Assembly (NCBI RefSeq): GCF_964204645.1
Contig: NC_134031.1
Location: 1,550,001-1,614,000 of the forward strand
From: Tubulanus polymorphus
Taxonomy: Eukaryota > Animalia > Nemertea
Reading direction: 5' to 3'
DNA length: 64,000 nt
In this document: in pieces, positions 23,601-26,600 of the stretch
Layout: each line of letters starts with the position of its first letter
Numbering within the stretch: the first letter of the stretch is position 1
The notes under the pieces: model-generated
What the model saw: only the letters and a program-made list of their open reading frames with translations
Database searches by the model: none
What the model was told of the DNA's origin: nothing
Translations under genes and position numbers: made by a program

Positions 23601-26600
23601 TTGAAAATGGCTGATAGAGTTGAAACATGAATCCTCTGTGGGTTTTTAAATCAACTCAATCACTCTCTAATTCTTAGTAATGCCATTTCTTTCACTTAAT
23701 GGATTAAACAAAATTACCTTCTTTCGGACTAATGACATTATTCCGATCCTGGTGAGTACATGTTGTCGTGACAACCCTTCTCGCGGTACTCCGTCGGCGA
23801 ACGTATCCGAGTTATCGGCTCCGGGTTCACAGAGATGTCTCATAAACAGCGACACATAAGCTTTGAAGACTTTCTCCGATTTGTTGCGTAAATCTCGTAC
23901 GAGCCATTGAGAATTGAACGCGTCTTGTGGAGGCATTCCGTACCTCATTACAGCGTTCAGGAACGCTTTCCTCTGTCGAGCGTTGAATCCTAACACCTGC
24001 AACAATGAGACAATACGTTGAATGAGATCAGAATTCAGCGGTAGATATTCTCCTCTTTGCTCTTGCTCCGGTAAGGAGTGAATGTACACAGTCAAATACT
24101 TCAGACATAGACAGAAACTGTTTGATCTCAACAAATTTTCCTAACTTTTAGCTATTTTACAAAATTTCCTGACTATTCCTCGAATTTTTTAAAAAGAAAA
24201 TTCCAAGACTTTTCCCTGGTTTCTAGGTTAAGCGGCCACTCTGCCTGGTGGGTAAGTTGCGAATGTACCATGATGCCTTTAAAAATTGCACTGAAAATCG
24301 CGCAATTTCCTAAATACATGGTTAGATTTTTTTCTACGTCTGACGTTCACTACAAAGTGATCCGAGTCTCGAGAAACTTTGCTCAGCCTCATCAGACGAT
24401 GTTCGTAGTAATTTAGAGATGTGTTTTGCGTTCATAGATGGCAGCACCATGAAGAGAGGTATTGCCCAGTTCATACACAAACAATTATTATGTATGTCAC
24501 ATGAAGAAGGCACTATAACAGATACTTCACTGTATAATACTCGATAATTCACGTGACAATATTCAACGCTGCAATAAGAATATGGATTGAAATGAACGTA
24601 CCTCAATTTGTCCATTAACGCGAGCCAATAGAGGGGGTAACGGTCGATCTCTGTCTCCACGACGTTTACTGCTTCGACCTTCAGTTTTCTCATCAAAGTC
24701 ATCATCATCTTCCTCATTCTCTGCAATCAATGTTAACAGTGTGAAACACGGACGATTTATCCAGATGGAATGGTGAATTGAGAGAGGGGCAAGATTATCA
24801 CCTCTAATAATCAAGACCCAGTTCCACAGTTGTGAGTTAGAGTTAACTCCGAGTTAAGATTATTTCACTTTCAATGAGTTAAATCAAGAGTCAAATCTTA
24901 ACGCAGAATTGTGGAACTGGATTCAAATCATTCACAAATAAATGGTTAGACCCTCTATAACATATTTTACATTTCTGAACACATTGAACAAATCAGATCA
25001 GTATTCCCCGGAACAAGATAGTAACAAAATACTGAAAATCAGCAGCAATTGGCAGTTCTGGGTTATCAAAACCGAATAATCCTAAATTCCGTAATTCATT
25101 CAGCCTTCATTATCTTGGTGCCCAAATACCGATGACCCACGATATACGGATGATAAACTCACCTCGACCGGTCTGACCGCTGAAATCCGAATCAAAGTCC
25201 GATAGATTCTCGTTCCATTGATCCTCATCGTTCGCGGTCATTGCGTCGTTATAATTGACTTGTTTACGAACTCGTTTGCCTTTACCGAGCGTTCGCGCGA
25301 GATCCTCCTGTTGCTGCTCGTAATGATGTCGTAATAGTTTCTCCCAGTACGCCGGATCGGCAGTATCTGCTTCCTGTTTGATCACCTCACGTTCTTGCTC
25401 CTCCTGAAATCAACAGAAAAATTATCAATGAACAATTTCTGTCGAAGACAAAGAAAACTTCAGGGGCTGCAGTTGCTTAGAAGTTGGTTAAGAAAACTGG
25501 CGGATAGATACCATAGTGACAATGAACTGTTACTTGTCACTATGTCAACTATCCACAGGTTAACTCTAAACAACTGCTGAACAACTGGCTCCAGGGTTTG
25601 TTACAGATCAGGGGATCCAAAATTTTCTGATCTTTGACCAAAAATTCCCTTTGAATCATAAGGTATTCTCAGGAATATTTCTTCAAAAGAAGTTTCTTGT
25701 GCCACTTGTCACACTGAAGAGTCTGAATTCCCTGATTTTTCTGCTGGGAACAATAAATCCAGAATTCCCTGATTTTTTTTGGATCTGTAAGAACCCCGAG
25801 GACCACGTCACAAAATCCACAAACCTCTTCCTCTGTTTCTTTCACTTGATATGTAGCGACCTTGAACGAACTGAGATATTCGTTCATCGCTTCGATTTTC
25901 TCGACCTGTCCAACCTGCGACCGATCGAGTAATTTCGATATCGCCTCGTCGTCGTAGACGATACGATTCTCCTCATTGTTGTCGGTGGTTTCCTCTTTAA
26001 ACAGTTCCTCCGTACCGAACTTCAGGATGTCGTCCAGTTCTTGTTTAGACATACTGGCACCTTTAGCTCCCATTCCCGGCCGTACGACCAAATGAGTCAA
26101 CATCATTTTTTTCTTGGCGACCTGAGTGATACGTTCCTCGACGGAACCCCTCGTTACGAATCGGTAAATCATAACTTTGTTTGCTTGACCGATTCTATGA
26201 GCTCGACTGAATGCCTGCAATCAAAAAACGAATTTCAATGAAACCATGATCAGTATTTTAGGGCTGAAAAGTGTTATCAGTAAACATCCATTATATATAT
26301 ATCGCTTATAGTCTTACAGTAAGAATTGAATTTTTTTCAGGAAATATATTTCATTGAAACATGAAAGAATATTTAGCAATTATCAGTAATCAATAGTGAG
26401 ACCCTCAGTAGCATATTTCTTATTAGCACCTTTCATATTTCTGTATGCATCAAACAAATCAAATCAGTTTTTACTTGTTACATAACAAATACTGAAAATA
26501 TCAGGAACAGCTGTTGGCTTATTTCAACCAGTTTAAATATCACATTAGTTACCTGTATGTCATTGTGAGGATTCCAGTCAGAATCGTAAATGATGACAGT

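Follow-up and report, generated by a model that had tools for sequence, protein, structure and literature searches.

The question raised by this locus was whether an intron of the Mi-2/CHD3-4-5 homologue of Tubulanus polymorphus encodes a box H/ACA pseudouridylation guide RNA, and which uridines such an RNA would address. The window, meaning the whole 64,000-nt stretch of contig NC_134031.1 that was analysed, had been given a sequence-only reading that proposed a dual-guide RNA in this intron, with one pocket for U5 U43 and another for U2 U7. Our analysis indicates with good confidence that the element is a genuine intron-encoded box H/ACA guide that corresponds, in invertebrates, to ACA57/SCARNA11 of vertebrates. 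It is a divergent new relative in a known guide family, a result that is solid and not surprising. The host intron and the core of the RNA have the following features.

23997..24601, minus strand: intron of the Mi-2/CHD3-4-5 homologue that hosts the RNA, 605 nt long, GT..AG, in phase 0 ahead of VLGFNARQ
24261..24399, minus strand: predicted mature H/ACA RNA (hairpin, hinge, hairpin, tail), 139 nt, fold z = -5.2
24337..24398, minus strand: 5' hairpin, with the 9-bp basal stem P1 formed by 24390-24398 and 24337-24345
24330..24335, minus strand: box H, AGAAAA, assigned by sequence, which fits ANANNA
24267..24322, minus strand: 3' hairpin, with the 6-bp basal stem P1 formed by 24317-24322 and 24267-24272, from the fold, covariance model R1 and covariation
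24264..24266, minus strand: box ACA, assigned by sequence, followed by the predicted 3-nt tail 24261-24263

The exons that flank the intron, ..NGQIE and VLGFNARQ.., are Mi-2/CHD3-4-5 by translation; the Mi-2 exons were used as separate queries and not as one joined protein. A spliced RNA contig (run X4) joins 23994/24600 (cut +2) and skips exactly 605 nt, and the guide RNA is oriented in the sense direction within the intron. The RNA evidence consisted of the contigs of four runs, with only X4 clearly RNA-derived; this run held spliced mRNA and no intron contig, and assembled contigs cannot reveal a small RNA. The minimum free energy (MFE) of 24399..24261 on the minus strand is -45.2 kcal/mol. 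A set of 200 dinucleotide shuffles gave -28.2 +/- 3.3 kcal/mol, and no shuffle did equally well (z = -5.2). The order in the fold is the 5' hairpin on its 9-bp basal stem, AGAAAA, the 3' hairpin on its 6-bp basal stem and ACA followed by 3 nt. The MFE fold bears out the hairpin-H-hairpin-ACA architecture proposed earlier, and the intron borders bear out its place, sense to Mi-2. The guide RNA sequence is present as a single copy in the 268-Mb genome, and the 3' hairpin, which scores 46.9 bits with covariance model R1, is, of the candidates scored, the genome's sole match.

The target of the 3' hairpin was read from its two pocket strands.

24310..24314, minus strand: 5' pocket strand of the 3' hairpin, UUUAG, which pairs with CUAAA of U5 loop I and is kept in orthologues
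24275..24280, minus strand: 3' pocket strand of the 3' hairpin, AAAGGC, which pairs with GCCUUU of U5 loop I and begins 14 nt before ACA

U5 loop I holds the exons through both splicing steps. The snRNA sequences with which the earlier pairings had been drawn are present in this genome's own U2 and U5. Against its own U5 loop I the 3' pocket forms 11 perfect base pairs (5+6) and leaves a U and an A unpaired between them, and the exposed uridine, 14 nt from ACA, is the last U of the CCUUUU run, the equivalent of human Psi43. This agrees with the earlier claim of a U5 U43 pairing placed 14-15 nt from ACA. When the letters of the 3' pocket were shuffled with the pocket positions fixed and matches to any of 236 snRNA uridines were allowed, a match this good had p = 2e-3. 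The motif AAAGGC-N8-ACA alone has a chance expectation of 0.43 per 64 kb. Both U5 43 and U2 7 are pseudouridines in human (PMC7960923). On the complementarity described above, the 3' pocket is a well-supported predicted guide for the U5 loop I uridine.

The U5-guide 3' hairpin is also found on the same (sense) strand of the orthologous Mi-2 intron in 12 further divergent loci, among them that of the mite Euroglyphus maynei. At the DNA level their host exons are just 70-78% identical, and the lineages are therefore old. The spacing from pocket to ACA is 14 nt in all 12 of the sequences parsed, with AUA as the box in one of them, and the pocket is essentially invariant; the basal stems have unrelated sequences across the orthologues and are still complementary. 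A covariance model built from 6 sequences recovered 7 others with E values from 6e-7 to 0.05, and nothing more appeared below E = 0.1 in 555 kb. In 12 sequences the stem positions pair in 84% of cases versus 62% in shuffles (0/500 reach the observed value) and compensatory changes occur at 9 of 11 pairs, counts that were made on a model-fitted alignment, which leans towards structure; MAFFT alone misaligned the 5' pocket. The fold of hairpin, hinge, hairpin and tail is likewise seen in the 10 orthologues for which a full-length stretch of 165 nt could be folded. A blastn comparison of the guide RNA and the intron with the related loci gave chance words only, and no protein fragments matched the part of the exon ORF that reads through into the intron, so that there was no congener for comparison. 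Of the proposed RNA, the 3' hairpin, its pocket, its spacing and its covarying stems are conserved in the orthologous loci, where the U2 pocket of the 5' hairpin is absent.

This places the uncertainty in the 5' hairpin, whose pocket strands are the following.

24383..24389, minus strand: 5' pocket strand of the 5' hairpin, AGGCUGA, which pairs with nt 9-15 of the genome's own U2 over 7 bp with 1 G-U (duplex -9.6 kcal/mol)
24346..24351, minus strand: 3' pocket strand of the 5' hairpin, AGUGAA, whose first 5 nt pair with nt 2-6 of the genome's own U2 and which lies 16 nt from box H

The 16 nt between pocket and box H are at the upper end of what is usual. With the genome's own U2 the 5' pocket forms 12 bp (7+5), 2 of them G-U, leaving U7 and C8 unpaired, and in the same shuffling scheme (pockets fixed, any of 236 snRNA uridines) this match has p = 4.5e-4. 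When the upper stem is kept closed, U2-7 ranks first as a target for the 5' pocket across U1, U2, U4, U5, U6, U12, 5.8S, 18S and 28S. Two U2 registers fit, one exposing U7 (7+5 bp) and the other exposing U6 (8+4 bp), the latter using the lowest nucleotide of the upper stem. SCARNA8, SCARNA1, SNORA53 and SNORA57 offer a parallel, with one loop serving two adjacent pseudouridines (PMC8763049), although the dual capacity for U2 U7 or U6 seen here is a prediction only. The earlier statement that human U2 Psi7 has a different guide was correct, the assigned guide being U100/SCARNA14 (PMC7960923). Its target is the one predicted for the 5' pocket here; U100 is, however, a separate RNA and not the CHD4-hosted guide, and the two share only the predicted target, with no sign of common descent. 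The proposed U2 U7 pocket stands in part. Its match to U2 of the same genome is genuine and statistically out of the ordinary, but the pocket is found in none of the 12 other orthologous loci and has an alternative in 28S rRNA. Guiding of U2 U7 by the 5' pocket is accordingly offered as a prediction.

The alternative that survives best is that the RNA is a single-function U5 guide whose 5' hairpin is an orphan, a structural module or a 28S guide, with the U2 U7 match idle in vivo. We regard it as possible and somewhat doubtful. It would fit the lack of a U2 pocket at the other loci, where a target search with the 5' pockets of the orthologues gave no common target, and it draws on the 28S alternative at position 3081, which pairs over 14 bp with 4 G-U and nominally outscores U2 if the lowest pair of the upper stem opens. 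Published tests point the same way: many well-paired guide pockets fail to modify endogenous RNA (PMC8522698), and fly scaRNAs can base-pair with rRNA yet leave it unmodified (PMC3884663). Against this, the 28S pairing needs an open upper stem and vanishes when a closed stem is required, the U2 duplexes (-9.6 and -3.3 kcal/mol) are stronger than those with 28S (-6.2 and -2.5 kcal/mol), and the U2 match, with p of about 4.5e-4, coincides with a modified uridine of human U2 (PMC7960923).

A further candidate unit lies upstream in the same intron.

24420..24558, minus strand: second H/ACA-like unit of uncertain status, with two hairpins, an ACAUAA hinge and ACA, separated from the main RNA by about 20 nt

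Its presence on the same strand, as a second hairpin-hinge-hairpin-ACA-like arrangement, would allow the functional RNA to be a tandem H/ACA RNA of about 300 nt with four hairpins (24261-24558), like vertebrate U93/SCARNA13, and not 139 nt long. We consider this improbable: the upstream unit only weakly beats its shuffles (z = -2.3), a target search with it gave matches at background level only, and several of the orthologous introns (216-280 nt) seem to fit one unit only. That there is no gene at all, only a chance resemblance of hairpins and short motifs in the intron to an H/ACA RNA, is very unlikely because of the conservation data: at 12 other divergent loci the element occupies the orthologous intron in the same orientation, with an invariant pocket and spacing and with covarying stems. 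The fold z of -5.2 can be added to this, even with no Rfam match and a bare motif expected as often as given above.

Returning to the RNA as a U5 guide of the SCARNA11 kind, we compared it with the known guides. Human scaRNA11/ACA57 is a CHD4-hosted U5-43 guide (PMC6466398), and chicken GGgACA29, 147 nt long and located in CHD4 ('intron 33'), addresses U5-43 by its 3' hairpin with 4+6 nt (PMC2653536), so that the hosting of SCARNA11 by CHD4 given in the sequence-only reading agrees with the literature. The likeness extends to size, architecture, host and target: a box H/ACA RNA, some 140 nt long, located in a CHD4/Mi-2 intron and directed at U5 Psi43 (PMC2653536; PMC6466398; PMC7960923). The 3' hairpin is used in chicken and here, with 4+6 nt in the former and 5+6 nt in the latter. 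The differences are that there is no detectable sequence similarity to ACA57/SCARNA11 and that no Rfam model scores the element. The Rfam comparison suggested by the earlier reading covered the window, the region and 8 + 20 loci at gathering score, where no H/ACA family was found, and the 12 orthologous loci at E <= 10; Rfam, SCARNA11 included, gave no match to the window or to the 12 orthologous loci even at E <= 10. The specificity of the 5' hairpin also differs, with 28S-1612 predicted in chicken (PMC2653536), none reported for human in the cited literature and U2 U7 predicted here. Drosophila scaRNA:PsiU5-44 (pugU5-44) is an intron-derived, WDR79-bound H/ACA RNA of the Cajal body that is a predicted guide for U5 44 (PMC3884663), a position that is probably the equivalent uridine.

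The earlier reading had placed the link between host and guide before the vertebrates. This is likely, because the hairpin is conserved in the orthologous intron of the 12 other loci and the literature describes CHD4-hosted U5-43 guides in vertebrates, but it does not hold everywhere. In the mosquito Topomyia and in Priapulus, the complete Mi-2 gene has neither the intron nor a hairpin or model match, and the fly U5-44 guide may sit elsewhere than in a Mi-2 intron because Mi-2 of Topomyia, the single dipteran included, lacks the intron and any model match. An intron at the same position, containing no guide, is present in the sterlet locus and in a second vertebrate-like locus, both assigned to CHD5 by their sequence signature. 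A shark CHD4-like contig has an intron longer than 10 kb and showed no upstream exon; neither a guide, within 10 kb, nor a SCARNA11 match turned up on it. In the nematode Soboliphyme, a 1.5-kb intron contains AAAGGC-N8-ACA and a basal stem of 8 bp read by hand; the candidate was rejected on its mismatched 5' pocket and the absence of a model match. A broader picture, of which we are slightly less than half convinced, is that a U5 guide has occupied the same Mi-2/CHD4 intron since before the arthropod-vertebrate split, with a fixed 3' hairpin and a freely exchangeable 5' hairpin (U2 Psi7, possibly Psi6, here; 28S in chicken; other, unassigned pockets at the remaining loci). If true, this would be among the oldest linkages of a snoRNA to its host gene and would provide a natural series of modular guide swaps.

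The U5 pseudouridine at the equivalent of human position 43 appears to be widely conserved, being known in human and matched by the position-44 guide in Drosophila. To our knowledge, its guide is largely unannotated outside vertebrates and Drosophila, because sequence-based models (Rfam) fail. With the structural signature UUUAG ... AAAGG, 14 nt, ACA, and a covariance model, the guide can be located in many invertebrates at the orthologous Mi-2 intron. Its association with the host gene is likely to be far older than vertebrates, yet it has been lost in some lineages, and the locus makes a possible gain of a second specificity by a guide RNA, for the 5' end of U2, open to testing.

Starting from the observed fold, boxes, intron position and conserved 3' hairpin and from the complementarity to the genome's own snRNAs, we infer processing, protein binding, localisation and modification as follows. 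The guide RNA would be transcribed within the Mi-2 pre-mRNA, and exonucleases would trim the excised intron back to a dyskerin/Nop10/Nhp2/Gar1 particle assembled on the hairpin-H-hairpin-ACA core. UUUAG and AAAGGC would then clamp U5 loop I and expose the last U of CCUUUU and the next A at 14 nt from ACA, where dyskerin would isomerise the uridine. The 5' hairpin would act as an evolutionarily variable module that here sets U2 U7, or U6 in the shifted register, at 16 nt from box H. A last feature bears on localisation.

24368..24371, minus strand: CGAG, CAB-box-like, in the apical region of the 5' hairpin, assigned by sequence

WDR79/WRAP53 would be recruited by the CGAG of the 5' apical loop, and the particle would thereby become concentrated in Cajal bodies. 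The CAB consensus is ugAG with an essential G4, and a fly C/D CAB box begins cgaG (PMC4041459). As the sequence-only reading stated, CGAG does lie near the apex of the 5' hairpin (24371..24368), although the MFE structure partly base-pairs it. Of the 10 full-length orthologues, 5 have an nGAG in or at the edge of an apical loop, and the two mites and one other locus have none. Status as a scaRNA (Cajal-body RNA) is putative and would follow from the CAB-like CGAG and from the type of target, the best structure-consistent targets predicted being the same genome's U5 and U2, which are Pol II spliceosomal snRNAs.

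The exons on either side of the candidate RNA belong to a Mi-2/CHD gene. The flanking open reading frames translate to ..LARVNGQIE (upstream) and VLGFNARQ.. (downstream), and their homologues are Mi-2/CHD3-4-5 proteins. A 1,664-nt contig of the RNA run X4 joins 23410/23716, 23994/24600 and 24720/25163, each skipped segment having CT..AC at its plus-strand ends, and these splice joins give intron borders of 23997..24601 with the candidate inside in the sense orientation. The host proposed from the sequence is borne out. Contigs of the three other runs that hold the stretch run across exons as well as introns and look DNA-derived. 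All run data are contigs, which are incapable of showing a small RNA, and the candidate guide is a predicted gene. The features of the intron are as follows.

23997..24601, minus strand: host intron, 605 nt, GT..AG, from the spliced X4 contig
24261-24399, minus strand: candidate H/ACA RNA, 139 nt; hairpin, AGAAAA, hairpin, ACA plus 3 nt
24420-24558, minus strand: second H/ACA-like unit in this intron, separated from the main RNA downstream by about 20 nt; composed of two hairpins, ACAUAA hinge and ACA

Folding confirmed the architecture that had been claimed for the candidate. The RNA reaches a minimum free energy of -45.2 kcal/mol, whereas 200 dinucleotide-preserving shuffles average -28.2 +/- 3.3 and none of them folds as well (z = -5.2). 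In the 5' hairpin, a basal stem of 9 bp and an upper stem of 7 bp flank an internal loop of AGGCUGA (5' side) and AGUGAA (3' side), and CGAG lies within the apical region; in the 3' hairpin the basal stem is 6 bp and the upper stem 10-11 bp, with UAUUUAG and AAAGGCAU forming the internal loop. The sequence occurs once in the 268-Mb genome. The Rfam search suggested by the sequence-only reading, with SCARNA11 in mind, returned no family at gathering scores over the whole window or at E <= 10 over 23900-24800. In run X1, from another sample, the 139-nt RNA differs by 1 base, at the unpaired nucleotide between basal stem and box H, and the next intron has five differences across the 119 nt covered, a weak pattern in the expected direction. 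That next intron also holds, at 24815-24857, about 40 nt whose word depth is ~13,000-166,000 in each of the four runs, compared with tens to a few hundred elsewhere in the stretch; many different flanks are joined to it on both sides, and it is a very high-copy dispersed repeat.

We took the target set from the source genome itself (U1, U2, U4, U5, U6, U12, 5.8S, 18S and 28S). The 3' pocket pairs perfectly with the genome's own U5 loop I, as had been claimed with human U5, UUUAG with CUAAA and AAAGGC with GCCUUU, leaving unpaired the final U of the uridine run and the next A; the pocket starts 14 nt before ACA. In human U5 the corresponding uridine is Psi43, which is guided by ACA57 (PMC7960923). 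When the pockets were fixed and their letters shuffled, an equally good match to any of 236 uridines in six snRNAs arose with p = 2e-3 for the 3' pocket and p = 4.5e-4 for the 5' pocket.

Because blastn against related loci found nothing, the orthologous intron was surveyed directly, by protein searches with the downstream exon and a metagenome scan that gave about 90 loci. An intron lies exactly at the ..IE / VLGF.. junction in about 25 of these (tblastn), and 12 of the 25 or so carry the U5 hairpin on the sense strand: L017 (the house dust mite Euroglyphus maynei) and, all on metagenome or WGS contigs, L056, L053, L035, L090, L067, L100, L032, L091, L088 (box AUA in place of ACA), L046 and L097 (read by eye; model E = 0.03; box UCA). 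Each has UUUAG, with at most one letter changed, then an upper stem and AAAGG, whose first A lies exactly 14 nt ahead of ACA. All ten foldable full-length 165-nt stretches form a complete hairpin-H-hairpin-ACA RNA with the U5 hairpin as 3' half. Host exons comparable over their whole length are 89% identical in DNA between the two mites and otherwise only 70-78%, and the lineages are therefore old and separate.

The basal stems are unrelated in sequence yet complementary (ACCAUG/CAUGGU in the window, UUGACCA/UGGUCAA in L067, GGAACA/UGUUCC in L032). R1, a covariance model built from six hairpins with the pockets left open, finds the seven other hairpins at E = 6e-7 to 0.05 and nothing further below E = 0.1 in 555 kb searched on both strands; genome-wide, the window copy is its only match among the candidates scored. 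No Rfam model matches any orthologue. In a 12-sequence alignment fitted to the structure, which somewhat inflates the numbers, 84% of pairing cells can pair versus 62% in shuffles (0/500 reach it), 9 of the 11 pairs show compensatory changes, and the covariation score is 0.66 versus 0.26, every slid control being far lower. We judge it very probable that the candidate is a true H/ACA RNA guiding pseudouridylation of U5 loop I.

Human scaRNA11/ACA57 is a U5-43 guide hosted by CHD4 (PMC6466398), in agreement with the sequence-only reading. For chicken GGgACA29 (147 nt, CHD4 'intron 33') two targets are predicted, U5-43 through the 3' hairpin (4+6 nt) and 28S-1612 through the 5' one; according to the authors, this RNA unites functions that are separate in human (PMC2653536). 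Our candidate resembles it in combining a fixed 3' U5 module with a variable 5' module. We consider it very probably a divergent member of the SCARNA11/ACA57 kind, and with the U5 hairpin in the orthologous Mi-2 intron of 12 other loci, the residence of such a guide in Mi-2/CHD4 probably predates vertebrates, as had been proposed. The link does not hold everywhere: neither the mosquito Topomyia nor Priapulus has the intron or any R1 match anywhere in its Mi-2 gene, and several loci have the intron and no hairpin. Two loci with the CHD5 sequence signature, one of them from sterlet, retain an intron at this position with no guide in it, and nothing was found inside the >10-kb intron of a shark CHD4-like contig. 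In Soboliphyme baturini, the orthologous 1.5-kb intron has AAAGGC, 8 nt and ACA with an 8-bp basal stem by eye (L112:2075-2165); its 5' pocket strand is unmatched to U5 and R1 gives no hit, and this doubtful remnant may represent a homologue that has decayed or diverged. Two metagenome loci (L015:516-932 and L016:1-565) have in the orthologous intron, instead of the guide, a long near-perfect inverted repeat with 17-22 bp stems, MITE- or hairpin-like.

The 5' pocket, which the sequence-only reading assigned to U2 U7, does pair with the genome's own U2, through 7 bp at nt 9-15 and 5 bp at nt 2-6, each with one G-U, which leaves U7 and C8 free at a distance of 16 nt from box H; in a shifted 8+4-bp register U6 would be exposed instead. 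Human U2 has Psi6 as well as Psi7, the latter assigned to U100 (PMC7960923), a different scaRNA, in line with the sequence-only reading. The competing match, 28S position 3081 (14 bp, four G-U), requires the lowest upper-stem nucleotide and is lost once the upper stem must stay closed; its two duplexes, at -6.2 and -2.5 kcal/mol, are less stable than the U2 ones (-9.6 and -3.3). The 5' hairpins of the orthologues have differing pockets with no target in common, and the U2 pocket was found in none of them; the U2 specificity is therefore lineage-specific or non-functional, and a U2 Psi7 guide function is a reasonable prediction. The mite orthologues (L017:1628-1792 and L056:2816-2980) have a U-rich 5' pocket strand, CUUUUUUC, common to both 5' hairpins, which suggests a conserved second target in mites. 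U5 position 59, the best proxy match for the L017 5' pocket, was not convincing.

The upstream unit at 24420-24558 has a fold only modestly more stable than its shuffles (z = -2.3), its pockets match targets no better than background, and in run X1 its hinge lacks 3 nt at 24484. If several snoRNA units per intron are usual here, it is more likely a neighbouring independent or decaying unit than part of a four-hairpin composite.

The CAB box published for H/ACA RNAs is a terminal-loop ugAG whose G4 is essential; that of fly C/D RNAs starts cgaG (PMC4041459). Drosophila has the Cajal-body scaRNA pugU5-44 (PMC3884663). With nGAG in or at the edge of the apical loop in 5/10 full-length orthologues, the CGAG/nGAG pattern is compatible with a scaRNA and weak evidence for one.

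At least 22 U2 snRNA genes form a head-to-tail array with a period of ~1.8 kb at G000:C7:13975223-14013011 in the source genome, on the window's own chromosome and ~12.4 Mb from it. One rDNA unit (G000:C12:7064000-7072000) has 5.8S and 28S behind only the last ~60 nt of 18S, with short GC-rich repeats in an array ahead of it; in neighbouring units the 18S is full-length at 2,012 nt, and this one is a truncated unit or an assembly artefact.
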